From Mobula birostris (Eukaryota), in contig NC_092383.1 in the NCBI RefSeq assembly GCF_030028105.1, positions 87,253,921-87,317,920 on the forward strand: a DNA stretch of 64,000 nucleotides, written 5' to 3'. A program made the position numbers and the translations under genes. Shown in pieces: positions 17,457-61,615 of this stretch (positions are counted from its first letter, which is position 1; every line of letters starts with the position of its first letter). Under the pieces are notes generated by a model, which ran no database searches, was not told the origin of the DNA, and worked only from the letters and a program-made list of their open reading frames with translations.

Positions 17457-17493
17457 ATGTGGATTCCGATTCTTCTCATCTGCTCACTGCCTG
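17457..17493 (+). CDS. Gene 2 leader exon (MWIPILLICSLP)
   Basis: ATG in acaATGt context, hydrophobic peptide, strong donor G|gtgagt. Phase 1 joins the V exon to give ...SLP-VSGALWA. Confidence 0.8.
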
Positions 17494-19559: not shown

Positions 19560-21612
19560 TACCTCTGCTAGTGAGCAACTCACTAATGGTGTAGACCTGC
19601 AGTACTTCGAGTTCTTAATGCATACTAGAAGCTTGTGATCATTAGGTGTACATTTAGGTACAACAGTAGCACCTTTTAGTGACCCCATAGAAGCCACTGT
19701 GACCATTTACACCACCATCTTGCTGGAAGTTAGCAATCTTCTACATTCTAAAGAATGCAGTGCTAACTTGTTCAATCTTTCCCTGTTACTCAGGTCTTTC
19801 AGCCCTGGCAACATCCTTGTAAATTTTCACTGCAATCTTTCAACCTTGTGTAACTCGCTTCAGCTAGCGGCTTAATCTAGAAGATGATAGCCCCCTGGCC
19901 CGTCATAACTTAAGAAATCTCAATTGGGTGGATGCTGTGTGATGTGTCCCCATTACAAATCAGTACCACGAAATAACAAACAGTACACAATATGCAATTA
20001 AATGATTGTGCTTTATAATTCTTAATTAGTAAAGAAACAAAACAAAGAAAAGGGCCCATTCTCATGAAACAGTCTAGTGCGCAATGTTGGAGCTCACTGT
20101 TCAATCCACTGGTTTTCCGTTGACCTGCCCCGAGCAAAACTGATCCTCGGAACCTCGCTCCAAATCGACTCCGTCCGGCAGTCCGCCACCTCTCTCCATT
20201 TGCGTCTTCTCTCCTCATCTCTCCTTGTCAAAAGACCACAAAATCCCTTCTCCCAGCACCACAAAAAACAACAACATCCCTCATTCCAAGGCCCCGTTAT
20301 CTCTAGTCATAACCCAAACACTGCTACAGAGAAACTATTACATTAGCAGTGAAACCTCACAGCACGTTACACTTGTTTACATCTTTCCTGCAGATGGGTG
20401 ACCAAAACTGTACATAATGCTCCAAATTAGCCCTTCCAAACGTTTTATACAACTTCAATGTAACATCCCATCTTCTGTACTCATTGATTTATGAAGGCCA
20501 ATGTGCCAAAAGCTTTCTTTGCAACTTTATCTACCCGTGACACCACTTTCAACAAATTATGTACCTGTTTTCCCAGATCCCTCTGTTCTACCACACTCTC
20601 ATTGCCCTACCATTCCCTGTGTAAAACCTACCCTGGTCGGTCCTACCGAAGTGCATAACATCGCACTTGTCTGTATTAAATTCTTTCTGCCATTTTTCAG
20701 CCCAATCTTCCTGCTTATGCAGATCCCTCTACAAGCCATGATAGCCTTCCTCACTACCCACTACACCCCCAGTCTTGGTGTCATCTACAAATTTGCAGAT
20801 CCAGTTAACCACGTTATGATCCAGATCATTGATACAGATGACAAACAACAAAGGACCCAGCTTCCATCCTTGCAGGACACTACTAGTCACAGGCCTCAAG
20901 TCAGAGAGGCAACCATATACTACTACTCTCTGGCTTCTCCCACAAGCCTAATCCAATATACTACCTCATCCTGAATGCCAAGTGACTGAAACTTCTTGAC
21001 AAGCCTCCCATACGGAATATTGTTAAATGCTTAACTCAATGCATGCTGACAACGTCCACTGCTTTGTCTTCATCCACTTTCCTGGTAACTTCCCTGACAT
21101 ACTCTATAAGGCTAATTAGACACGACCTACCATGCACAAAGCCATGCTGCCTATCCTTAATCAGTCCATGTCTATCCAAATACTTAATATATCCGGTCCC
21201 TTAGAATACTTTCCAATAACTTTCTCACTACTGATGTCAGATGCACTGGCCCATAACTTCCTAATTTGTATTTAGAGCCTTTTTTAAGCAGCAGAACAAC
21301 ATTGGTTATCCTCCAATCCTCTGATACTTCTCCTGTCACTAAGGATGTTTTAAATATCTCTCCTAGGGCCCTGGCAATTTCTACACTTCCCTCCCATAGT
21401 GTCCAAGGGAACATCTTCTCAGGTCCTGGGAACTTATCCACACTGATTTGCCTCAGGGTAGCAAATACCTCTTCCTCTGTAATCTGTAGATGGTCCATGA
21501 AGTTGATGCTACTTTCCCTCATTTCTACAGACTCTGTATCCATCTCCCAACTAAATACAGATGCAAAGAATGCATTTACTATCTCCCCATCTGTTTTTGC
21601 TCCGTACATGTG
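19560..21612 (-). mobile_element. CR1 LINE, RT region and 3' part (decayed)
   Basis: ORF 21184..21621(-) reads NAFFASVF...PGP...DWRITNVVLLLKKG...YGPVHLTSVVRKLLESILRDRI. Interrupted by the solo LTR. Confidence 0.88.
19849..20371. mobile_element. Solo LTR inserted in a CR1 element
   Basis: TGTAAC...GTTACA termini with a 4-bp target-site duplication CTTG (19845-19848 and 20372-20375). CR1 sequence resumes on both sides. Confidence 0.88.
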
Positions 21613-22660
21613 AAACCCCACTGGTGTCCTTCATATCAGACACATACTTCTGATAAGTTTGCTGTAGTAGATCTTCCTCACTAGTCCCACAACAGAGGTC
21701 AACGGGAAACCTCGCTTCACGCCCAAATATCAGATAATACGGCAGGTACCCGGCAGCTTCGTTCTGTGTACAGTTGTAGCAGTGGACCAGACGTTCAGTA
21801 TGTTGACTCCACTTGTCCTTTTTAACTAATTTCCAAGGTTCCGAGCATGTCTAGCAAGATCCAATTGAGCCTCTCGTGCTGCGGATCACCCTGTGTGTGA
21901 TAAGGCTTAGTCCCTGACTTCTTAACTCCAAGTATGCTCAGTAACTCATGTATGAGCCTATTCTGTAAATCCTGTCCCTGATCACTATTTACAGTATTCG
22001 CCTGGGGAGGCCATAATAAAAGATACAATTCTCCCATAACACTTTGGCCATGGTGGACACCTTCTGATTCTTGGTAGGGAAGACTTGCGCAAATCCGGTG
22101 TAGTGATCGGTAATGACCAAGACATTCACATGTTGCTGGCACCAGGCTCTGTTGATAGGAAATCCATACACACCCGGTCACGTGACCCCGCACTCTGTAA
22201 GTGGGACAATGGAACGGCCCTCGTAGGCAGCATCTTCCGCCATGTGTATCGAATGCACGACTTGCTGTATTCATTGAACTCCGGCTTCATTTGGGGCCAG
22301 TAGGACTGATCTTTCAGCAATCCATAAGTCTTGTCAACCCTCAGATGACTGGAGTCATCATGCAGTGACTTCAACACAATCCTCACAATTCTCACGCAGA
22401 GCCGGCCGGGAATCCCAAGGCTTGTCTGGAGGCGATGTGACCCAGTAATCGAATCTGGTTCCTCAGCTCCAATCTGGGCCATCCACTCAGTAGCAGAGAG
22501 ATTCAGCTCGTCCACTTGGGCCATGGCCCCTTCCACAACTGCTGACCAGATGGTGCCCATGCATGGCTCATCTCTCTAAGCAGCTGCCACTTCCCCAGGA
22601 CTCAATTCCGGCAACTGCTTTGTCTTGAGAGCAGTCAGGATGCAGTAAGCCTGTGGAGTG
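21613..22660 (-). mobile_element. Gypsy integrase remnant (frameshifted)
   Basis: Zn-binding-like HDDSSHLRVDKTYGLLKDQSYWPQM and core motifs CMDFLS, NVLVITDHYT, FPTKNQK, YYGLPRR, SDQG, TKPYHTQGDPQHERLN are spread over several frames. Confidence 0.88.
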
Positions 22661-22679
22661 GCACCATTAGAAGCTCCCA

Positions 22680-24836
22680 AAAGAACTACCACTGGATTCC
22701 GCCCTTGCCTTTCCTCTGCCTTCACCGTGATGGAAAACTGGCACATGGCTTTGACTCCTGGGGCAGGAATGCTCTCCTACTCTCTGTCCCTGTCCAGCTC
22801 TTCATGTGCACGTTGGGACAATGCATTGGCATTAATGATCAACCACGGTTGCATCCTTTTTCCACTCGAAAATTTCTTCTTTTTTGGAATATACCTGTCT
22901 TGCATATTCCTCATTTCTCGCATTAACTCCAGCCACTGCTGCTCTGCTGTCTTTCCCGCCAGTGTCTCTTTCCAGTCGACTTTGGCCAGTTCCTCTCTCA
23001 TGCCACTGTAATTTCCTTTACTCCGCTGAAATACCGACACATCAGATTTCAGCTTCTCTTTTTCTAATTTCACAGGGAACTCAATCATGTTATGATCACT
23101 GCCTCCTAAGGGTTCCTTCAGCTCAAACTCTCCATTCACCTCTGGTTCATTACACAATACCCAATCCAGTACAGCCTATCCCCTAGTAGGCTCAACAACA
23201 AGCTGTTCTAAAAAGCCATCTCGCAGACATTCTACAAATTCTCTCTCTTGAGATCCACTGCTGACCTGATTTTCCCAATCCACTCGCATGTTAAAATCCC
23301 CTACAATTATCATAACACTGCCCTTCTGACAAGCCTTTTCTATTTCCAGTTGTAATTTGTAGTCCACATCCCTGCAGCTGTTTGGAGGCCTGTACAGAAC
23401 TGCCATCAGGGTTCTTTTACCCCTGCGATTTCTTAGCTCAACCCAAAAACATTCTGCACCTTCCGATCCTATATCACCTCTTTCTAATGATTTAATATCA
23501 TTTCTTACCAATAAAGCTACGCCTCCCCCTCTGCCTACCTTCCTATCCTTCTGATACACCGTGTATCCTTGGACATTCAGCTCCCAGAGACATGCATCCT
23601 TTAGCCAGGTCTCAGTGATGGCCACAATATCATACCTGCCAATCTGTAGCTGTACAACAAGATCATCCACCTTATTCCTTATGCTGCGTGCATTTAAGTA
23701 CAACACCTTAAGACCAGTATTTGATACTTTTTGCTTTGATTTCACTGCAACTTTATTGCACTGCAACTCATCCCAATGGCTACAAATTTGCCCCATCACC
23801 TGCCTGTCTTTCCTGACATCTTTACTGCTCACTATCTTAGATTTATTTCTGTTTTCCCCTTCCTCCGCTCTATCATTCCGGTTCCCATCCCCCTGCCAAA
23901 TTAGTTTCAACCCTCCCTAACAGCTCTATTAAACTTTCCCGCCAGGATATTGGTCCCCTTCGGGTTCAGGTGTAACCTGTCCTTTTTGAACAGGTCATAC
24001 TTCCCCCAGAAAAGATCCCAATTATCCAAGAATCTGAAGCACTGCCCCCTACACCAGTCTCTCAGCCACGCATTCATCTGCCTGATCCGACTACTCTTGC
24101 CCTCGTTAGCACGTGGCACAGGTAGCAATCCCGAGATTACTACCCTGGAGGTCCTGCTTCTCAGCTTCCTTCCTAACTCCTGGAAATCTCTCTTCAGGAC
24201 CTCCTCCTTTGTCCTATCTATGTCAATGGTATCAACATGTACCAAGACAACTGGCTGCTCACCCTCCCCCTCTAGAATATTCAGGACCCGATCCGAGACA
24301 TCCCGTACCCTGGCACCTGGGAGGCAACACACCATGCGGGTATCTCTGTCAGGCTCACAGAATCTCCTGTCTGTTCCCCTGACTATGGAATCCCCTACGA
24401 CTACTGCATTTCTCTTCTCCCTCCTTCTCTCCTGCACAACAGCGCCAGGCTCAGTGCCAGAGACCCGGTCACCGTGGGCATCCCTGGTCAGGTCATCCCC
24501 CTCAACAGCATCCAGAACAAGATATTTGTTGCTGAGGGGGACAGCCACAGGGGTGCTCTCCAATATCCAGGCATTTCCCTTCCCTCTCTTGACAGTGACC
24601 CAGCTTTCTGACCCCTGTAGCCTAGGGATGACTATATCCCTGTAGCTCCTGTCTATCACCTCTTCACTTTCCCTGATAAGCAGTAGGTCATCAAGCTGCA
24701 GCTCCAGATCCCTAACAAGGTCTCTGAGGAGCTGCAACTCGGTGCACCTGGCGCAGATGCGGCCATCAGGGAGGCTGGAAGTCTCCCAGGATTCCCACAT
24801 CTGACACCCTGAACAAAGCACTAACCCTGCAGGCAT
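22680..24836 (-). mobile_element. CR1 LINE 5' half: ORF1 (Zn finger/coiled coil plus SGNH esterase-like domain) and APE endonuclease
   Basis: ORF1 runs from the ATG at 24836 to 23907 (CSGC...CARC, VVVGDSIV, LPGA, DRLHLN). ORF2 endonuclease reads LYLNARSIRNK...ITETWL...GRGGGVA...YRPPN...GDFN...GSDHNM, with a stop at 23176. Confidence 0.92.
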
Positions 24837-25989
24837 GCTATCAAATTCTACAGGAATGAAACAGGAAAAATAAGTGGTCATTGACATATAAAGTAAAAAT
24901 AACTGGTTCCAGCACAGATCATTATGGAACACTACTAGTCATCTTTCATTGGCTCCACTGTCAAGGTCTTGTTTAGATTGATCTTTGACTGGAACTTCCC
25001 CCTTGACCTTTCTGCCATGGAGGACCATACCGGATGGCATCGCTCCCAGGATGTCAGGAAATCACAAGCCTCTCCACCACCACAAGGTGATGATCCATGG
25101 AGAAGTGAGTAAGCGGTAGCATTCTGAAATGCTCTTCCTGAACAGTTGGTAGAGTCAGGAACCTTCAGCACAGTAAACTGAGCCTGGAAGGTGTATCTGA
25201 AGTGCTGTCACCTGCCGGGCAAAGGGCCCAGTGTTAGAGGGAGGACCAGAACATACAGCGCTTCTTCAACCAGTACTGAAGAAAGGGCTGAATGGCCTCT
25301 TAAGTCATAAGTTCTATGATCCTGCTCCAGGAGAACAGAAGTGGGACTGAATATTTCATTTTTTATTGACAGGAAATTCTGGTGACATATGTCAATGTCC
25401 GTTTTTGCCAAGAACAAAACCAGAATGTATGAAGACCCTAATGTTATTTTGGGATTCAACATTTTCTGTATATATAGTACATTCTCCTGCCCTCAAATTT
25501 CAGGTGAATAGAAATCAACTGCCCTCAATGACCACTCCCCTCACCCTGCTCCCCAAGAAGTAGACGGTGTCTCTTGTCTCCCTCAGTCCGCGGTCTCTCA
25601 CCATTCAGGGGAATACATGCACTGAATGTCCTTGGAAAAGTTGGGATCTGAGGAAGAAGCTGAGTAAAAAGCTGGGAGATACCGTTAGAAGCCACGCATT
25701 GAAGATGCAACTGTTCCGCGACAAGGGTATAAGCCAAACACTGGTGACTGCCAATCCTACTACCTTCTGACCACAAACAGGGGTGAATGTCTGATTGGTG
25801 TCTTTGTAAAGGGATGGATATTCACCAGCACAGCCAGGATATTCACTCTGAATATTGAAAAGATTTTGAGGATACAAAGGTCTGTGGACTCCAGAATTTG
25901 GAGTGACAAACTATCAGCTGGAGGAACTCGGTGGGTCAGGACTTCAGCATCTGTCAGGGGATGGGACGGCTGAGGTTATTGACCTGACA

Positions 25990-27400
25990 TAGGTTTCCGA
26001 CCTGAAACTGCAACAGATGTTGGCTGACCAACTGATTTCCTCCATTGCTTTGTGAGTTGCTCCAGAAAGTTGTTTGCGAAGCAGTTTCTTTTTGTCCACT
26101 CAAGAAATTTCGAGAGATTGAAAAAGTTAAAAGACATTTTCAATCTCTCATTGCTACAGCCAGAAATTCCCACTTGCTTCGAAAGGGCAACAATTTTACC
26201 AGTGCCCAAGAACACCAGTGTGAGCTGGCTGAATGATTATCGTCCAGTCGCACTCACATCTACGTGATGAAGTACTTTGAGAAGCTGGTCATGGCCAGAA
26301 TCAACTCCTGCCTCAGCCAGGACCTGCACCACAGCAATTTGCCTATTGCCACAATAGATCTATAGTGGATGCAATCTCATTGGCTGTCCATGCAGCCTTG
26401 AATCACCTGGACAATAAAATACCTATGTCAGCATACTATTTATTCACTATAGCTCAATGTTTAACACCGTCATTCCCACAGTGCTTTTTGAAGAGTTATA
26501 GAACCTGGGCTTCTGTACCTCCCTCTGCAAATGGAAGACCTCAATCTGGAAATAACAACTCCACCTCACTGACAATCGACAGTGGTTCACCTCAGGGACG
26601 TGTGGTTAGTTCGCTGCTCATGTTCTCTCTACACCCGTGACAGAGTGGCTAGGCACAGCTCAAATGTCATCTATAAATTTGCTGACGATACACCCATTGT
26701 TGGCAGAATATCAGGTGGAAATGAGAGGGTGTGCAGGAGTAGATATACCAGCAAGTGGAGAGGTGTTGTGGCAACATCCTTGCACTCACTGATTGTGGCC
26801 TTGAGAAAAGCTAAGAGGAGGGTACACACACCGTAGGGGGATTGGAAGTGTAGAGAGTGAGCAATTTCATGTTACTGGGCATTAGTATCTCTGAGGACGT
26901 AATCTGACCCCAGCAAATTGATGCAGCTGTGAAGAAGGCAAGACAGTGGCTGTATTTAATTAGGATTTTGAGAAGAATTGGTATGTCACCTAAATATCTA
27001 CATATGTACTGTGGAGAGCATTCTGACTGGCTGCGTCACTGTCTGGTATTTGGGCATGTGGGCCGGGGGTGGGGGGGGGGGGGCGGGAGGGAACGCTGAT
27101 ACTGTACAGCATCAAAGTAAGCTGCAGAAAGTTGTCAAATTAGTCAGACCCATCACGGATACTCGACTCCACAGTTTACAAGACATCCTCAAGAAGCAGT
27201 GCCTCAAAAAGGAACTCTGCCACCCAGGACATGCCTTCTTGTCATTGTTACCTTCAGGAAGGAGGTACAGAAGCCTGAAAGCATGCATTCAGAATTTCAG
27301 AAACAGCTTCGTCCCCTCTGCATCCAATTTCTGAATGGACATTGAACCCAAGAACACCTTGTCACTTATTTTTAATTCTGTTTTTTCACTGCATATTTAA
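25990..27400 (+). mobile_element. Rex1/Babar-type non-LTR retrotransposon (decayed RT and 3' end)
   Basis: Motifs [46 protein letters not shown] and CTVESILTGC...HPGHAFLSLLPSGRRYRS. Confidence 0.85.
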
Positions 27401-27559
27401 TCTAACTATTCAATATATATAAATACTGCAATGGACAGTTTTTTTTTGTTCGATATTATCCTGTATTGCATTGTAGTACTGCCACAAATTAACAAATTTC
27501 ACAACATGTGCTGTTGATATTACACCTGATTCTGATTTACGGAAACATGTTCTCTTCAG

Positions 27560-27880
27560 TTTCAGGTGCATTGTGGGCAGAGAAAAATGTAACAGGAGTT
27601 GTGGGAAGAACAATCACAATCGATTGTCACTATGAAGCAAAGTACAGCTCACACACAAAGTATTGGTGCCATGGATGGAGTCGTCATTGTTCAGTTTTAG
27701 TGGAAACAAATGAGCATCACGGACAGCGTGGACGAGTATCAATCACAGATAACCCGGAACGGAGGATATTTACTGTTACAATGAAGGATCTTCGCTCTGA
27801 AGATACAGGATGGTACAGCTGTGCAATTACAACATCAGGTTATGACCCAATGGTTAACATACATCTGCAAGTGTCTGACG
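27560..27880 (+). CDS. Gene 2 V-type Ig exon V1
   Basis: tctcttcag|...GAC G|gtatgt, 321 nt, phase 1-1. Encodes VSGALWAEKNVTGVVGRTITIDCHY...KYWCHGWSRHC...EDTGWYSCAI...HLQVSD. Confidence 0.92.
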
Positions 27881-28296
27881 GTATGTAACGCAGTGATGGA
27901 CTTTATGTCTCTATTGAAATGTCTGATCCAAGTTTTCTCTAGGAACGGCCATGGTATCATTGATATCCCCGAGGCTCCGCAGTAGTGTAGAGTCCTACTA
28001 GGAATACACAGCAGTCAAGAAACCCAATTCATGTTGATCTCACCCAATTCATGGTCATGGTCCAATGTTCCGCCTGTATCTTCAAGAATCTGATGGTACA
28101 TTTATCAGGGCTTTACTTTCTGTTCCCCACTAAAATATCTTCTTTGTCTTCACTGCGAAGGGTCAGGACAGTTCCGATATCCCGAGGGTCTACATCCCCT
28201 CTGCCATCCGATTTCTGAACTGACAGTGAACCCATGAACACTTTGTCACATATTTTTGTTTCTGTTTTTTCACTGCATATTTAATCTAACTACTTA

Positions 28297-28340
<44 letters not shown>
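28297..28340. repeat. (TA)n microsatellite; related tracts at ~29858-29885 and (CA)n at ~31405-31447
   Basis: Read directly from the sequence; each abuts the left TIR of a mariner-derived element. Confidence 0.95.
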
Positions 28341-28343
<3 letters not shown>

Positions 28344-28345
<2 letters not shown>

Positions 28346-28978
28346 AGGGTTGATTGATAAGTTTGTGGCCTAAGGTAGAAGGACCCAATTGTAGAAAACT
28401 TAGCACATTTATTTTGCAACATAGTTCCCTCCTACATTTACACACTTAGTCCAGCGGTCGTGGAGCATACGGATCCCTTCTTTGTAGAAGTTGGCATCTT
28501 GGACCTCCAGAAAGTGGCCCACAGCAGGGGTGATTGATACGTTTGTGGCCTAAGGTAGGAGATGAGTTATTAACTTCAAACCTTCTGCATTTTCACTCAA
28601 AGAGTTGAACTGCACGTGCATGTAACGAGAGCTGTATAACTCATCTCCTTCTACCTTAGGCCACGAACTTATCAATCACCCCTGCTGTGGACCACCTGGA
28701 GGTCCAAGACATTCTCGTTACATGCACGTGCAGTTCAACTCTTTGACTGATAATGCAGAATGTTTGAAGTTAGTAACTCATCTCCTTCTACCTCAGGCCA
28801 CAAACTTATCAATCACCACTGGTGTGAACCACTTCTACAAAGAAGGGATGCGTATGCTCCACGACTGCTGGACTAAGTGTGTACATGTAGAAGGGGACTA
28901 TGTTGAAAAATAAATGTACTAGGTTTTCTAAAACTGACTCCTTCTACCTTAGGCCACAAACTTATCAATTATCCCTCG
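28344..28978. mobile_element. Fold-back mariner-derived non-autonomous element, copy 1
   Basis: TIRs gggttgattgataagtttgtggcctaaggtagaagga / tccttctaccttaggccacaaacttatcaattatccctcg, inserted in a TA tract. Both arms carry the mariner transposase C-terminus (FYKEGMRMLHDCWTKCVHVEGDYVEK*) in opposite orientations, and there are internal TIR copies. Confidence 0.85.
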
Positions 28979-29120
28979 TATATTATTAATGCAATGGATA
29001 GTTTTTTGTTCTGTATTATCCTGTATTGCATTGTAGTACTGCCACAAAGTTAACAAATTTCACAACATGTGCTGTTGATATTACACCTGATTCTGATTTA
29101 CGGAAACATGTTCTCCTCAG

Positions 29121-29441
29121 TTTCAGGTGCATTGTGGGCAGAGAAAAATGTAACAGGAGTTGTGGGAAGAGCGATCACAATCGATTGTCACTATGAAGCA
29201 AAGTACAGCTCACACACAAAGTATTGGTGCCATGGATGGAGTCGTCATTGTTCAGTTTTAGTGGAAACAAATGGGCATCACGGACAGCGTGGACGAGTAT
29301 CAATCACAGATAACCCGGAACGGAGGATATTTACCGTTACAATGAAGGATCTTCGCTCTGAAGATACAGGATGGTACAGCTGTGCAATTACAACATCAGG
29401 TTATGACCCAATGGTTAACATACATCTGCAAGTGTCTGACG
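29121..29441 (+). CDS. Gene 2 V-type Ig exon V2
   Basis: Intact splice sites, 321 nt. Four nt differ from V1 (T>A, E>G, two silent). Confidence 0.9.
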
Positions 29442-29890
29442 GTATGTAACGCAGTGATTGACTTTATGTCTCTATTGAAATGTCTGATCCAAGTTTTCTC
29501 TAGGAACGGCCAGGGTATCATTGATATCCCCGAGGCTCTGCAGTAGTGTAGAGTCCTACTAGGAATACACAGCAGTCAAGAAACCCAACTCATGTTGATC
29601 TCACCCAATTCATGGTCATGGTCCAATGTTCCACCTGTATCTTCAAGAATCTGATGGTACATTTATCAGGGCTTTACTTTCTGTTCTCCACTAAAATACC
29701 TTCTGTGTCTTCATTGCGAAGGGTCAGGACAGTTCCGATATCCCGAGGGTCTACATCCCCTCTGCCATCCGATTTCTGAACTGACAGTGAACCCATGAAC
29801 ACTTTGTCACATATTTTTGTTTCTGTTTTTTCACTGCATATTTAATCTAACTACTTAATATATATATATACATATATATATATACACACA

Positions 29891-30525
29891 CAAGGGTTGA
29901 TTGATAAGTTTGTGGCCTAAGGTAGAAGGACCCAATTGTAGAAAACTTAGCACATTTATTTTGCAACATAGTTCCCTTCTACATTAACACACTTAGTCCA
30001 GCGGTCATGGAGCATACGGATCCCTTCTTTGTAGAAGTTGGCGTCTTGGACCTCCAGAAAGTGGCCCACAGCAGGGGTGATTGATACGTTTGTGGCCTAA
30101 GGTAGGAGATGAGTTATTAACTTCAAACCTTCTGCATTTTCACTCAAAGAGTTGAACTTCACATGCATGTAACGAGAGCTGTATAACTCATCTCCTTCTA
30201 CCTTAGGCCACGAATTTATCAATCACCCCTGCTGTGGACCACCTGGAGGTCCAAGACACTCTAGTTACATGCACGTGCAGTGCAACTCTTTGAGTGATAA
30301 TGCAGAATGTTTGAAGTTAATAACTCATCTCCTTCTACCTCAGGCCACAAACTTATCAATCACCATTGGTGTGAACCACTCCTACAAAGAAGGGATGCGT
30401 ATGCTCCACAACTGCTGGACTAAGTGTGTACATGTAGAAAGGGACTATGTTGAAAAATAAATGTACTAGGTTTTCTAAAACTGACTCCTTCTACCTTAGG
30501 CCACAAACTTATCAATCATCTCTCG
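29891..30525. mobile_element. Fold-back mariner-derived element, copy 2
   Basis: Near-identical to copy 1, at the same position in the repeat unit. Confidence 0.85.
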
Positions 30526-30666
30526 TATATTATTAATGCAATGGACAGTTTTTTGTTCGATATTATCCTGTATTGCATTGTAGTACTGCCACAAATTAAC
30601 AAATTTCACAACATGTGCTGTTGATATTACACCTGATTCTGATTTACGGAAACATGTTCTCCTCAG

Positions 30667-30987
30667 TTTCAGGTGCATTGTGGGCAGAGAAAAATGTAAC
30701 AGGAGTTGTGGGAAGAGCGATCACAATCGATTGTCACTATGAAGCAAAGTACAGCTCACACACAAAGTATTGGTGCCATGGATGGAGTCGTCATTGTTCA
30801 GTTTTAGTGGAAACAAATGGGCATCACGGACAGCGTGGACGAGTATCAATCACAGATAACCCGGAACGGAGGATATTTACTGTTACAATGGTGGATCTTC
30901 GCTCTGAAGATACAGGATGGTACAGCTGTGCAATTACAACATCAGGTTATGACCCAATGGTTAACATACATCTGCAAGTGTCTGACG
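30667..30987 (+). CDS. Gene 2 V-type Ig exon V3
   Basis: Intact splice sites, 321 nt. Three nt differ from V2 (K>V by a 2-nt change, one silent). Confidence 0.9.
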
Positions 30988-31396
30988 GTATGTAACGCAG
31001 TGATTGACTTTATGTCTCTATTGAAATGTCTGATCCAAGTTTTGTCTAGGAACGGACAGTGTATCATTGATATCCCCGAGGCGCCGCAGTAGTGCAGAGT
31101 CCTACTAGGAATACACAGCAGTCAAGAAACCCAACTTATGTTGATCTCACCCAATTCATGGTCATGGTCCAATGTTCCGCCTGTATCTTCAAGAATCTGA
31201 TGGTACATTTATCAGGGCTTTACTTTCTGTTCCCCACTAAAATACCTTCTGTGTCTTCACTGCGAAGGGTCAGGACAGTTCCGATATCCCGAGGGTCTAC
31301 ATCCCCTCTGCCATCCGATTTCTGAACTGACAGTGAACCCATGAACACTTTGTCACATATTTTTGTTTCTGTTTTTTCACTGCATATTTAATCTAT

Positions 31397-31446
<50 letters not shown>

Positions 31447-31451
<5 letters not shown>

Positions 31452-31927
31452 AGTGATTGATAAGTTTGTGGCCCGAGGTAGAAGGAGTCAATTTTAGAAA
31501 ACCTAGCACATTTATTTTTCAACATCGTCTCCTCCTACATTTACACACTTAGTCCAGCAGTTGTGGAGCATAGGATCCCTTCTTTATAGAAGTCGGTGTC
31601 TTGGACCTCCAGAAAGTGGCCCACAGCAGGGGTGATTGATACGTTTGTGGCCTAGGGTAGAAGGAGATGAGTTATTAACTTCAAACCTTCTGTATTATCA
31701 CTCAAAGAGTTGAACTGCACTTGCATGTAACGAGAGCTGTATAACTCATCTCCTTCTACCTTAGGCCACAAACTTATCAATCACCCCTGCTGTGGACCAC
31801 CTGGAGGTCCAAGACGCTCTCATTAGATGCACGTGCAGTTCAACTCTTTGACTGATAACGTGGAAAGTTTGAAGTTAATAACTCATCTCCTTCTACCTCA
31901 GGCCATGAAATTATCAATCAGCCCTCG
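31447..31927. mobile_element. Fold-back mariner-derived element, copy 3 (shorter, more diverged)
   Basis: Same TIRs and left arm; the right-arm transposase segment is missing. Confidence 0.8.
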
Positions 31928-32068
31928 TGTATAAATACTGCAATGGACAGTTTTTGGTTCTATATTATCCTGTATTGCATTGTAGTACTGCCACAAATTA
32001 ACAAATTTCACAACATGTGCTGTTGATATTACACCTGATTCTGATTTACGGAAACATGTTCTCTTCAG

Positions 32069-32389
32069 TTTCAGGTGCATTGTGGGCAGAGAAAAATGTA
32101 ACAGGAGTTGTGGGAAGAGCGATCACAATCCATTGTCACTATGAAGCAAAGTACCGCTCACATACAAAGTATTGGTGCCATGGATGGAGTCGTCATTGTT
32201 CAGTTTTAGTGGAAACAAATGGGCATCACGGACAGCGTGGACGAGTATCAATCACAGATAACCCGGAACGGAGGATATTTACTGTTACAATGGTGGATCT
32301 TCGCTCTGAAGATACAGGATGGTACAGCTGTGCAATTACAACATCAGGTTATGATCCAATGTTTAACATACATCTGCAAGTGTCTGACG
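32069..32389 (+). CDS. Gene 2 V-type Ig exon V4
   Basis: Intact splice sites, 321 nt. Five nt differ from V3 (D>H, S>R, V>F, two silent). Confidence 0.9.
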
Positions 32390-34568
32390 GTATGTTGCGC
32401 AGTGACTGATTTTATGTCTCCTCTGAAATGTCTGATCCAAGTTTTCTCTGGGAATGTTCAGGGTAGCATTGATATCCTGAGGCTCAGCAACAGGGCAGAG
32501 CCTTACGATGAGCTGTCAGGAGTCAGGAAACCCAATTCATGTTGATCTCACCCAATTCATGGTCACTGTCCAATGTTCCGCCTATATCTACAGGAATCTG
32601 TTGGTACATTTACCACGGATTTACTTTCTGCCCCCACATAAATATCTGCTCTGTGTCTTCACTGTGAAGGGTTACGACAACTCCCACATCCCGAGGGACC
32701 ACTGCAGTGCAGAGTCTTGTGAGGAGTGAACAGGAATCAGGGAATCACCCAGTGTGAGGTCTGACCCACTGATAGACACCGACTTCTATTGGGAGGCTCA
32801 GCACAATTTTCCTGCCTCAGAAGCATATGGAATGTCACCCTATCAGAGGTTTGCATTCAGAGTAAAACTAATAATCCAGCCATAACAGAGCAGTGAGAAT
32901 CCTGTTGCTCATGGGCTAAGTACCGGAAAACCATAAAAAGGGAATCATTTCCCAGAGCTCAACAGACTGCATTCAGTTCTTCCAAAGCAGGCCAGTCCAA
33001 TCCCTGGCCTATCTCAGGGATCAATCAGTCCCTCCTAACCCCCACCCCCCCACCTGTATCCCCATAAATGTGTTCTGAGCCCCCACCCCCAGAACCCACT
33101 GACCATCCACTCTGAAACATCCAGCCTCTTCATCCACCCATTACCGGCAGGAATCAGATTAAGTGAAATCTGATGAGATCTTGTCCCATCAGAATCCTTT
33201 TGTTTTCCTTTATCCATCTTGCCCTTTTACTCCTTGTCATTCCCCTCCACTGCCCTTGTGCCCACACTTTCTCCCTCTGGTGCCCCACCTACTTATTCTA
33301 TTCCATAGTCTACTGTCCTCTCCAAATAGATTCCTCCTTCTTTAACCCTTTGCCTCTTCCGCCTATCACCTCCCAATTTATCATACTCTTTTTTGCCCCA
33401 TCCCACCTTCCTGCCTTCCTCCTCTCACCTAGATTCACCTATCAGCTGTCAGCTTATGCTCCTCCTCCTCTCCCCACCCTTTTATTCAATCCTCTCCCCT
33501 CATTCTTTCCAGTCCTGGTGAAGCATCTCAGTCAGAAACATCACACGTGCATTTTCCTCCAGAGATGTTGCCTGACCTGCTGAGTTCCTCCAGCTCCTTT
33601 GTGTGAACATCCACCTTCCTGAGACTTCTGGGCTTCGCCCACTGCCTCCATGCAAACAGCAGCACCAAGGTACTCCTTTGCTGTAGCAGGTCCCAGAAAT
33701 CAAACACTTTCTCCCAAAACCCTCCAAGCATGTGACAGATATCTGACCATCAGAGCAAATACTGGCAATCTCACTGGCAGAAAGAGGTATAGCAACTAAA
33801 CAAATAGTTAATCACTTTTGTCATTTTTCATTGGCTAAGATTTAGCACATTACCCACATGGTAATTGTTTTAATTATCAATTAATTAATCACTATCTAAG
33901 AAATTTTCTTTATCTCATCTATAAAAGTGATGGATTTTTCAGAAGCACTATGTTTCATTTCTTTTTATTCCTTTGCATTACATCCTTTAGCATTGATTTC
34001 CCTTTAGCATCATTTCTCAGCTCTTTATTTACGTTTGTAGATTGATGAATATTTGTATGTTTTTTTACTCTAAATTAAGCAGAAATCTTTGAACTAAGAC
34101 TGCTCACACTGAAGTGGATCACTTCACATTTGTCTACAGAATGATGCATCTGCCATTCATTTGCTAATTCTCTGAACCAGTCCAAATCATGCTTAAGAAA
34201 CTCCTCATAGTACACATTGTCACCCGGCTTTGTGCCCTCTGCAAACTTGATATATTGCATTTAATTCCTCTGGACTATGTTATTAATATACAATGAGATG
34301 AGTTGGGTTTCTAACACTGAATGCAACAGTTTCCCTCTAAAAACTCACTGCCAGTCAAAAGCAGAGCTCTTCATTCCTGCTGTTTGAATTCTGTCTGCCA
34401 ACTGGTTCTCTATCCATATTAGTCCTCTAATCCACCTGTTTTAATCTGACATGTGTAGGACCTTATCAAATGCTTTCTGGAAATCCAAACACACAACCTG
34501 CTGTCATTATTCTGCAAGCTATCTTCTCATCTACTTGCACAGGGAAGCTGTTGAAACTGGATTTTATC

Positions 34569-35066
34569 GCCAGTGCGATCATGTTTGCTGTTGTGTGCTG
34601 GGGCAGCAGGCTGAGGGTAGCAGACACCAACAGAATCAACAAACTCATTCGTAAGGCCAGTGATGTTGTGGGGATGGAACTGGACTCTCTGACGGTGGTG
34701 TCTGAAAAGAGGAGGCTGTCCAAGCTGCATGTCATCTTGGACAATGTCTCCCGTCCACTACATAATATACTGGTTGGGCACAGGAGTACATTCAGCCAGA
34801 AACTCATTCCACTGAGATGCAACACAGAGCCTCATAGGAAGTCATTCCTGCCTGTGGCCATCAAACTCTACAACTCCTCCCTTGGAGGGTCAGACACCCT
34901 GAGCCAATAGGCTGGTCCTGGACTTATTTCCTGGCATAATTTACATATTACTATTTAATTATTTATGGTTTTATTACTATTTAATTACTTATGGTGCAAC
35001 TGTAACGAAAACCAATTTCCCCTGGGATCAATAAAGTATGACTTTGACTATGACTATGACTATGAC
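34569..35066 (+). mobile_element. 5'-truncated Rex1-type LINE with (GACTAT)n tail, inserted in the polypyrimidine tract of the stalk exon
   Basis: RT C-terminus SAIMFAVVCWG...RKSFLPVAIKLYNSS, then AATAAA and the tail. The paralogous site at ~50884-50905 is empty. Confidence 0.9.
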
Positions 35067-35078
35067 TTATCTCTACAG

Positions 35079-35229
35079 AATCTGGATACATTTCTGAAAC
35101 TTCTACAGAATCTGGATACATTTCTGAAACTTCTGTAACAGATTCAACGAGGACTTCACAATCTGAAACTTCAGAAATGAATTTCAATGATACTCGAAGA
35201 AAAAACATACAATCCATTTCTGCCAAAAG
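35079..35229 (+). CDS. Gene 2 Ser/Thr-rich stalk exon
   Basis: ctctacag|AA...AG|gtacaa, phase 1-2. Encodes ESGYISETSTESGYISETSVTDSTRTSQSETSEMNFNDTRRKNIQSISAK. A paralogous exon lies at 50906-51014. Confidence 0.8.
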
Positions 35230-38608: not shown

Positions 38609-38699
38609 TTACATGATATGGAAAGTGGGACGCTGGCTGTTCTTTGCTCTGCTGGCGATCTGCACTATCGCTGTCACGTGGTTCACGAGAGATAAAAAG
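38609..38699 (+). CDS. Gene 2 transmembrane exon with basic residue (SYMIWKVGRWLFFALLAICTIAVTWFTRDKK)
   Basis: Acceptor cttcccctttgttcag| and donor AAG|gtaagt, phase 2-0. Lys/Arg at the N-terminal edge of the hydrophobic helix. A paralogue lies at 61525-61615. Confidence 0.85.
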
Positions 38700-39500: not shown

Positions 39501-39590
39501 AGATCTGATCAATCAGATCCTCACCGCCTGGTCCAAGAGAAAGAGAGAAGGATCCCAGATTTCACCAACCGTGCGGAAGTTTTGCACTAA
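39501..39590 (+). CDS. Gene 2 terminal exon: short tyrosine-free cytoplasmic tail
   Basis: Acceptor tttttcttttatag|AGA, phase 0. Encodes RSDQSDPHRLVQEKERRIPDFTNRAEVLH*. Confidence 0.72.
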   Translation, partial: RSDQSDPHRLVQEKERRIPDFTNRAEVLH

Positions 39591-48135: not shown

Positions 48136-48454
48136 TTTCAGGTGCATTTTGGGCAGAGAGAGATTTAAAAAGAGCTGTGGGAAGAGTGAACAAGATCGAT
48201 TGTCACTATGAAGAAACATAATGCTCACACACCAAGTATCAGTGCCATGGATGGAATAAACAAGTTCAGTTTTAGTGGAAACAAATAGCAACACAGACAA
48301 AGAGAAAGAGTGTCAATCACAGACAACCAGGAACAGAGAAAATTTACTGTTACTATGGAAGATCTTTGCTTTGGAGATACAGGATGGTACAGCTGTGGAA
48401 CTACAACACAAGGACTCAATCTGAGAGTTCATTTATGTCTACACATATACAATG
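48136..48454 (+). pseudogene. Pseudo V exon (paralogue of the gene 2 V exons)
   Basis: ctccctcag|TTTCAGGTGCATTTTGG...AATG|gtaggt. It is 319 nt (two 1-nt deletions), has an in-frame TAA after CHYEET, and KYWC is changed to KYQC. DTGWYSC is retained. Confidence 0.9.
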
Positions 48455-49666: not shown

Positions 49667-50905
49667 TGGCCCCTCCAACACAGCTTCCTGAGCACCATTC
49701 TCTGCCGAGTGCTTTGACCCCGCCCCGGCCACCGAGAAACAAGCAAAGCCGAGGACTCGGGGCCTTCTCCTCCGGAGATTCTGGATCACACAGCAGCAGT
49801 GGCAGCGAAGCAGGCATTTCCGAAGTTTCTCCAGATGTTCCTCCGTGCTCTCACATCTGTCTCCATCAAATCAGGATTGTGCACAGCACCCTACTTGACA
49901 GATAACAGATATCATTCACCAGAGTGGCCACTGCGCACTACGTCAGGCATCATCCGCAGAAGGAGAAACGGTTAGCATTCTACATCACAAGCTCTTCATC
50001 AGAATAAAATCTCTGCCGACTTTCCTCCCAACAGCCATTTCTACTTACACTGAGAAAGTAGAAGCTGGAGGAGACCGTTTGGCCCTTTGAACCTGGGCCA
50101 CCGCTCAATGTAATCAGAGCTTATCTTCCATATTCAGTCTGTAGCTCCCACCTATCCTTCAATCCCTGATGCTTAAGAAATATCTTCAGCTCCTCCCTGG
50201 ATATACTTAATAATTCCACTTCAACTGTTTTCTGAGGTTGAGAATTTGGTTCATTCACCAGTCTCCGGGTGAAGAAATTTCACCACAACTCAGTTTTGAA
50301 CCTCTTACGCCATATCCTTAGATGGGGAACATCTTTCACCAAATTCATTTCTCCAGTCCTTTGAGAAAGATGTCGCTTTTCATTCTTCTAGAATCTTCCA
50401 TTGATCACACTGAAGTGGATAGTTTCACATTTGTCTGCAGTATGCTGCATCTGCCATTCATTTGCGAATTCTCTGAACCAGTCCAAGTCACACTAAAGAG
50501 TCTCCTCATAGTACACATTCCCATCCAGCTTTGTGCCCTCTGTAAATTTGCTATATTGCATTTAATTCCCCTGGACAATGTTATTAATATACAATGAGAC
50601 TAGTTGGGTTTATAGCACTGAATACAACAGTTTTCCACTATAAGCTTCCTTCCAGTCAAAAGCAGAGCTGTCCATTCCTTCTGTTTGAATTCTGTCTGCC
50701 AACTGGTTCTCTATCCACATCAGTCCTCTGACCTACCTGCTTTAATTTTACATACTAATCTTTCATGTAGAACCTTATCAGAAGCCTTCTGAAAGTCCAA
50801 ACACACAATGTTGACAGACTCGCTGTCAATATTCTGCAAGCTATAATCTCATCAAGTTGCACATGGAAACAACTGGAATTGAATTTTATCTCTTTATCTC
50901 TACAG

Positions 50906-51014
50906 AATGTAGATATACTTGTCAAACTTCTGCCACAGAATTAACAAGGACTTCACATTCTGAAAATTCAGAAATAAGATTCAATGCTACTGCAAGATCC
51001 AGTTCTGTCGAAAG
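50906..51014 (+). pseudogene. Stalk exon of the 48-51 kb pseudogene (donor GT>GC)
   Basis: Acceptor tttatctctacag|; encodes ECRYTCQTSATELTRTSHSENSEIRFNATARSSSVE; donor reads AG|gcacaa versus AG|gtacaa in gene 2. Flanking intron aligns with 34090-36560. Confidence 0.8.
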
Positions 51015-60835: not shown

Positions 60836-61155
60836 TTTCAGGTGCTATATGGGCAGAAGATAAAGTAAGAGGAGTTTTGAGAAGAATGATCACAATCGAT
60901 TGTCACTATGCACCAGTGTACCGTTCACACACAAAGTATTTGTGCCGCATGTGGGGTCATCAATGCACACTGTTAGTGAATACAAATGAGCAAAATGAGC
61001 AGTATGAAAGAGTAACAATCAGAGATAACGCATATTTACTGTTACTTTGGAGAGCCTTCTCTCTCAAGATTCAGGACTTTGCAGTTGTGTAATTAGAACA
61101 GCCGGCAATTACTCAGAGTTTGACGTGCATCTACAAGTACATCTCCATGTCCTGG
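60836..61155 (+). pseudogene. Pseudo V exon (more diverged paralogue)
   Basis: cttctccctcag|TTTCAGGTGCTATATGG; reads ITIDCHYAPVYRSHTKYLC...QC. About 10 nt are deleted after GATAAC, causing a frameshift. W>L and Y>C changes hit Ig core positions. Confidence 0.88.
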
Positions 61156-61524
61156 GTGACATGTTCCTTGCACTGTGTCCACTTCCTCCAATGAAATTTC
61201 AGTATCATAAAGGCACCTCTGAACTTCTAACTTCTCTATTTTTCCTGAATCCATTTTCACTGTGTAGTTTCTAATTCAAAGAACTCATTTGTAAGAGATT
61301 AAGTTACAGTGATTATGTGCCTGTAACTGATGATCACAGGTTGTTCCCCTTCCCCCATCCCGTCATTCAGTCAACACCAGTTGACTCTTCCAGTTGAACT
61401 CTGGCTCTGCTTACTTAGCTCATCCACTCCACCAAGATTACAGAGGAAACAGGAGGTAAATATTTCAAACTCAAAGCCATATCGTTTTGTCTCATTAATT
61501 CTGTATCTCTTCCCCTTTACTCAG

Positions 61525-61615
61525 TTTCATGATAGGGAAGGTTGGTCATTGGCTGCTCTTCACTCTGCTGGTGATCTGCACTATTTCAGTCACATGGTTC
61601 ACAAGGGAAACTAAG
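61525..61615 (+). pseudogene. Paralogous TM exon (FMIGKVGHWLLFTLLVICTISVTWFTRETK), frame still open, Arg>His
   Basis: Splice sites intact (tttactcag| and AAG|gtaggc). Lies 370 nt after the frameshifted V exon, with no stalk exon recognised between them. Confidence 0.8.

Follow-up and report, generated by a model that had tools for sequence, protein, structure and literature searches.

Gene and exon structure

The window analyzed in this study is a stretch of 64,000 nucleotides from the genome of Mobula birostris (assembly GCF_030028105.1, contig NC_092383.1, positions 87,253,921 to 87,317,920 of the forward strand). It holds a receptor gene, encoded on the plus strand, in which four nearly identical exons for V-type immunoglobulin (Ig) domains follow one another between a leader exon and a set of stalk, transmembrane (TM) and cytoplasmic tail exons. 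The V exons lie at 27560-27880 (V1), 29121-29441 (V2), 30667-30987 (V3) and 32069-32389 (V4). Each is 321 nt long, of phase 1-1, and sits in its own copy of a tandem genomic unit of 1.40-1.56 kb that is repeated four times. All of them have a pyrimidine tract and AG upstream, GTATGT downstream and an open reading frame (ORF) between. Translation yields a V-set Ig domain of 106 residues which matches the Pfam V-set family with E=1.6e-14 and 54 bits, the cut-off being 26 bits. The V-set core residues C22, W35 and C88 and the motif EDTGWYSC are present in the translation. The pattern KYWC-HGWSRH-C is found in all four exons and its cysteine pair aligns with the pair of pIgR domains D1, D4 and D5; a further disulfide within the domain, linking strands C and C', is thus predicted.

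The exons differ by four nucleotides between V1 and V2, three between V2 and V3, five between V3 and V4, and ten between V1 and V4. A first-pass annotation of this DNA had described four intact exons of this length and phase, with 3-5 nt between neighbors, and both its coordinates and its counts hold. Comparison of the translations returned exactly the six residue changes it had listed: T/A, D/H, S/R, E/G, K/V and V/F. The copies can be told apart by exon positions 51, 53 and 154 (V1), 215 (V2), 225 and 226 (V3 and V4) and 63, 87, 95, 287 and 294 (V4). By hand count, 11 nucleotides vary, seven of them non-synonymous and four synonymous, and two of the six residue changes (S/R and E/G) fall in loops resembling complementarity-determining regions (CDRs) 1 and 2. 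We rejected diversifying selection among the V copies, as these figures give no sign of it. With only six residues differing in all, the earlier proposal that the gene is a RAG-independent means of diversifying an innate receptor is not supported.

The leader exon (17457-17493) begins with ATG, encodes 12 residues plus the first base of the next codon and ends at a GTGAGT donor. The stalk exon (35079-35229) is rich in Ser, Thr and Glu codons, and its acceptor at 35079 is backed by RNA. The TM exon (38609-38699), placed from its sequence and splice sites, encodes a WKVGRW motif followed by a hydrophobic span, and the tail exon (39501-39590) ends at a TAA stop. A tblastn search of the window, using the gene model part by part, found one copy each of the leader, stalk, TM and tail exons, as the first-pass annotation had stated. 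No further Ig exon was found between V4 and the stalk by tblastn, and the RNA joint from V4 to 35079 is direct. The resulting gene model is a type I protein of 550 residues with a leader, four V domains joined directly to each other (VSD followed by VSGA), stalk, TM segment and tail.

The tail has about 34 residues and no tyrosine, and a Lys/Arg at the outer TM border is conserved. The short tyrosine-free tail, the basic residues and the homology of the TM segment and tail to skate MDIR5 make it plausible that the receptor is activating. Related ray proteins, e.g., P0061 and P0096, have N-termini that are almost identical to the leader and V-domain start of this gene. The stalk, TM and tail portion is 83% and 79% identical to P0096 and P0004 of Hemitrygon akajei, the products of two adjacent genes, and the Arg-Trp motif of the TM exon is kept across relatives.

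Several repeats were observed in and around these exons. A perfect 30-bp tandem repeat of 2.1 copies (35072-35134) in the stalk exon doubles a ten-residue Ser/Thr/Glu-rich peptide, and may be a site of stalk-length polymorphism. Intron 1, between leader and V1, is about 10 kb long because it contains the remnant of a long interspersed nuclear element (LINE) on the minus strand (20500-25000), with one ORF resembling a GDSL esterase and another an APE-type endonuclease. The intron between V4 and the stalk carries transposon fragments at 33544-33654 and 34543-35097, for which the depth of RNA contigs reaches 1.5e4-7e4; one of these fragments stops only about 10-40 nt 5' of the stalk acceptor.

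Family membership

Database comparisons place the gene in the elasmobranch CD300/pIgR-like family, whose members were originally described from skate under the name MDIRs. The closest solved structure is that of pIgR (5.7e-56, a multi-domain match), followed by CLM-1/CD300LF (1e-20), CMRF35-H (2e-16), NKp44 (2.6e-10) and TREM (about 1e-4). A search of 1.84 billion representatives returned 2864 relatives, mostly with several V stretches. The nearest proteins come from rays, skates and sharks and are annotated as "polymeric immunoglobulin receptor-like" or "CMRF35-like"; in the best match, from Hemitrygon akajei, the V domain is 81-91% identical. A search seeded with the Hemitrygon akajei protein retrieved MDIR2, MDIR3 and MDIR5 of the clearnose skate, whose MDIRs are reportedly the subject of Cannon et al. 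2006, Immunogenetics 58:362. By BLASTP, the gene model is 60-70% identical to MDIR2 for each V domain (E 1e-53 to 1e-62) and 52% identical to MDIR3 over 474 residues (E=4e-148), while its C-terminus is 45% identical to MDIR5 over 53 residues (E=1.6e-10).

MDIRs are cartilaginous-fish receptors that resemble CD300, TREM, FCAR and pIgR (PMC3031540). The family is marked by a variable number of phase 1-1 Ig exons, including direct V-V neighbors, and this arrangement is present here. It is also marked by a tail that either bears an immunoreceptor tyrosine-based inhibitory motif (ITIM) or is short and accompanied by a charged residue in the TM region, and the predicted protein is of the second kind. 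A C2-like domain after the V domains, as in MDIR2, MDIR3 and MDIR5, is missing. Since V-only relatives exist, its absence marks a variant and does not exclude the gene from the family.

We also considered a true pIgR orthologue and rejected it. The short tail without tyrosine is unrelated to pIgR tails and holds nothing that is needed for transcytosis.

Support for four units in DNA data

Units that are 97-99% identical are difficult to assemble, and the assembly and the DNA runs probably share one sample. An over-expanded array, in which haplotype variants of fewer units were placed in tandem, was weighed. In DNA run X1, contigs exact to the unit-2-specific intron (29468-29579) and the unit-3-specific intron (31014-31125) have word depths of 11.1 and 10.8, and the unique flank beyond V4 has 8.6-9.8. 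Misplaced haplotypes would be expected to show roughly half the depth of the flank, and with these values the array does not look like an obvious haplotype artefact. Three copies of a transposable element in the introns between the V exons, and the (AT)n/(AC)n tracts, also differ from unit to unit, and a V3-specific combination of single-nucleotide polymorphisms (SNPs) is found in RNA. We consider over-expansion highly unlikely. The single-copy depth of the unit-specific introns bears out the earlier view that the array is real, with a small doubt remaining since no single long read across it was seen and the DNA sample is perhaps the assembled one.

Splicing of the V exons

The RNA contigs of four runs, all from the same organism, contain a GT..AG joint that links the last base of a V exon with a V exon's first base, with depths of 45.6 in X15, 49.1 in X16, 66.5 in X25 and 68.6 in X26. 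This joint is absent from DNA run X1. On its upstream side, a junction contig is exact over 194 nt to 30794-30987, a stretch found only in V3 within the window. In X25, a V4-type end, recognized by T at exon position 287, is joined by GT..AG to 35079 with a depth of 23, and the contig spans the whole stalk exon and about 30 nt that fit the start of the TM exon. Ends of the V1-V3 type lead only to a V start in this run, whereas the V4-type end leads only to the stalk; the ratio of the two depths is 2.9. This ratio matches three V-to-V junctions for each V4-to-stalk junction and fits serial use of all four exons. No joint from a V1-V3-type end to the stalk was found among the listed RNA contig joints. 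In addition, a 162-nt RNA contig exact to V1, including the V1-specific A154, was found in run X17, which is from a closely related organism.

The two kinds of joint and their depth ratio indicate that serial inclusion is the main mode of splicing and exclude one exon per mRNA as the main mode. Of the two models offered by the first-pass annotation, the four-domain, pIgR-like receptor built by exon duplication thereby gains support. The other, Dscam-like choice or combinatorial isoforms as the main mode, is not supported: V-to-V joints are abundant, and no joint from an earlier V exon to the stalk was seen.

We think it probable that this is one gene with four V exons used in series, the exons having been amplified by unequal recombination and then homogenized. 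Starting from a single V exon, unequal recombination between introns that carry repeats would have produced four tandem copies, which later rounds of unequal crossover or gene conversion would have kept nearly identical. The primary transcript would be spliced as leader-V1-V2-V3-V4-stalk-TM-tail, with all four V exons in one mRNA. The product would be a membrane protein of type I, about 550 residues long, that carries four V domains, a mucin-like stalk, a basic TM border and a motif-free tail, in which the glycosylated stalk would hold four copies of one binding site off the membrane. By analogy with the family, four such sites would likely provide higher avidity or reach for a presumed repetitive or multivalent ligand, and signaling may proceed through an adaptor chain such as FcR gamma or DAP12.

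Several observations weigh against this reading. The RNA data are short de Bruijn contigs, neither reads nor long reads, from which rare variants are dropped, so minor skipping isoforms are possible. The junction words for V1 to V2, V2 to V3 and V3 to V4 are identical, no molecule with all four V exons was seen, and the same words would equally suit a back-splice. The leader-to-V1 junction was not seen among the loose ends of the RNA contigs, which are swamped by transposon-derived ends. Three of the four runs with V-to-V joints (X26, X15 and X16) have no contig depth over the stalk exon. Finally, the dominant V type in X15 and X16, in contigs aligned to 29166-29277 and 32114-32188, has G63/A79/C87/C95 (and C121) and corresponds to none of the four exons. 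It is absent from two other RNA samples, and DNA contigs with C87 or C121 occur at 3-4 times the single-copy depth. Because a V type from outside the window is abundant in X15 and X16, a paralogue or another haplotype adds V reads there, and may supply part of the V-to-V signal.

These last findings are the ground for a different explanation, which we hold to be improbable, in which the V-to-V contigs derive mainly from a paralogous or allelic multi-V gene while only V4, or fewer than four V exons, reach the mRNA here and the others are unused young duplicates. The foreign V type, the uncovered stalk and the raised DNA depth all favor it. It is countered by the junction contig that is exact to the V3-only stretch, by the perfect splice sites and open frames of all four exons, and by the fact that X25, the sole run covering the stalk, has depths that fit 3:1.

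Another possibility is that the array generates diversity by splicing, either because the number of V domains varies from one to four among isoforms or because a single exon is chosen as in Dscam. The phase 1-1 exons stay in frame in whatever subset they are joined, a fold-back element in every intron between V exons could pair in the pre-mRNA, and rare isoforms would be invisible to contigs. Nevertheless, V-to-V junctions are abundant in all four RNA runs, only the V4-type end was seen joined to the stalk, and the depth ratio leaves scant room for skipping. Since the domains differ at only six residues in total, exon choice would yield little diversity. The cloned skate MDIR3 and many annotated relatives also have their V domains in series, and we rate such a generator as very unlikely.

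The junction words are the same whether Vn is joined to Vn+1, to itself or to Vn-1, and the joints could in principle be back-splices, promoted by intronic inverted repeats, from circular RNAs that contain a single V exon or a few of them. Such repeats favor back-splicing in other animals. The 3:1 ratio to the linear V4-to-stalk junction is nevertheless in line with serial splicing, V-V junctions occur in homologous linear cDNAs and gene models, and there is no specific sign of circles in the data. We give circular RNAs hardly any weight as the source of these joints.

The additional A79/C87 V type could be a paralogue, another haplotype or a polymorphism of the array itself. In the last case, which we put forward only tentatively and consider rather unlikely, the array would be an individually variable module: unequal crossover between the introns with their many repeats would alter V copy number and SNPs among haplotypes and individuals, and the A79/C87 type would be an allele rather than a distant paralogue. 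The population would in that case be polymorphic for receptor length and avidity, possibly with minor exon-skipping isoforms in addition.

Origin and history of the array

A transposon-tail fragment bounds each unit. The first of these segments, A1 (27321-27426, plus strand, repeat family D8), lies upstream of V1, and copies A2 to A4 come after V1, V2 and V3, respectively. A1 differs by 14% from A2 and A3, which are exactly the same as each other. Segments of this kind were likely the substrates for unequal recombination.

The introns between the V exons each contain a nested fold-back, mariner-like miniature inverted-repeat transposable element (MITE). The copy between V1 and V2 (28343-28979) has 149-nt inverted arms with 90% complementarity as well as inner inverted repeats. 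The copy between V2 and V3 (29890-30537) is 2.8% diverged from it, while the copy between V3 and V4 (31450-31930) is shorter owing to a deletion and differs by 8-9% from the other two. The word depth of this element in DNA is about 1.5-2.3e5, compared with about 10 for single-copy sequence, which corresponds to some ten thousand copies genome-wide, an order of magnitude judged by depth. It is also abundant in the RNA contigs. The MITE sits at the junction of segments A and B in units 2-4, and the site upstream of V1, after A1, is empty. This distribution suggests that the element entered after the first duplication and was then amplified with the unit.

Divergence is unevenly distributed along the array. 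Divergence among the V exons is 0.9-3.1%, and that of the inner introns and of the MITEs other than the third is 2-3%. The outer flanks are far more diverged: compared with their counterparts, the segment 5' of V1 differs by 6.5-14% and the intron that follows V4 by 26%. The exon SNPs are arranged both as a gradient and as a mosaic, with V2 and V3 sharing some states with V1 and others with V4. This is not the pattern of four copies created at one recent moment. It suggests an older duplication, after which the inner array was homogenized by unequal crossover or gene conversion. The first-pass annotation had called the array newly built; the 1-3% divergence of exons and inner introns agrees with that description, but the outer flanks point to an older origin.

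Related remnants in the window and wider significance

Two further V-like regions were observed downstream of the gene. A decayed V exon at 48138-48447 is 58% identical, with an in-frame stop and a break in the frame, and is followed by a stalk-like remnant at 50899-51003; together these probably represent a pseudogenized copy of a receptor of this type. A third V-like exon at 60838-61139 is split over two frames by a frameshift. After it comes a TM-like exon at 61523-61615 that is 71% identical and in which the conserved Arg is replaced by His. This pair is a decaying or diverged paralogue.

In clean and dated form, the array illustrates the assembly of multi-domain innate immune receptors of the CD300/pIgR type. 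Because the V exon is phase-symmetric, amplified copies enter the mRNA at once. The same amplification appears to have run independently in little skate, sharks and several bony fishes, which makes it characteristic of the family as a whole and no peculiarity of this gene. The gene lends no support to a new diversity system, whether somatic or based on splicing. It could be a useful model in which to study how copy number changes and avidity is tuned in the innate receptors of elasmobranchs.

Comparison with known systems

The skate MDIRs resemble this gene in different parts. The leader is the same, the V domains match that of MDIR2 at the identities given above, and the WKVGRW TM segment and short tail recall MDIR5. 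MDIR3 shares the direct V-V junction (residues 18-122 and 124-228), and its two N-terminal V domains are 88% identical to each other. However, MDIR2, MDIR3 and MDIR5 alternate V with C2-like domains, and the tails of MDIR2 and MDIR3 are long and tyrosine-rich, while the gene studied here lacks a C2-like exon and has V domains only, four of them with a mutual identity of 94-98%.

A still closer parallel in design is found in Leucoraja erinacea, where XP_055510909.1/XP_055510910.1 have four adjacent V domains of 107 residues that are 97-99% identical, followed by a stalk. Isoform X1 has a TM segment and a soluble isoform is also annotated; the TM segment and tail differ from those of the Mobula birostris gene. 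The V domains belong to a different subfamily, with about 40% identity to those described here, so the amplification was independent. Apparently the two genes were built by the same process.

Activating receptors such as CD300/CMRF35-like proteins, TREM and NKp44 share the V type, and they too combine a short tail with a basic residue that lies in the TM segment or at its border. This combination is the pattern of receptors that signal via DAP12 or FcR gamma. In contrast to the four V domains here, these receptors carry only one. Drosophila Dscam1 also has tandem Ig exons of the same phase that look like alternatives, but each of its clusters contributes one exon per mRNA, whereas the V exons of the present gene are nearly identical and are spliced together.

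The pIgR of tetrapods and teleosts gives the best structure match and shares both the tandem CD300/pIgR-type V domains and the extra C-C' cysteine pair. A true pIgR binds polymeric Ig that contains J chain and is cleaved to yield secretory component. Its domains are old and mutually diverged and its long tail carries signals for basolateral sorting, endocytosis and transcytosis, whereas near copies and a tail of about 34 residues are found here. Among the 247 relatives that we fetched, 197 have at least two V domains, 48 have at least three directly adjacent, and 51 contain a pair that is at least 90% identical. Comparable genes are also found in Mustelus, Narcine and Heptranchias, as well as in several bony fishes. 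The four-V design is already known from the skate MDIRs and from many elasmobranch genes annotated as "pIgR-like", a group to which this array adds a member whose V domains are still almost the same.

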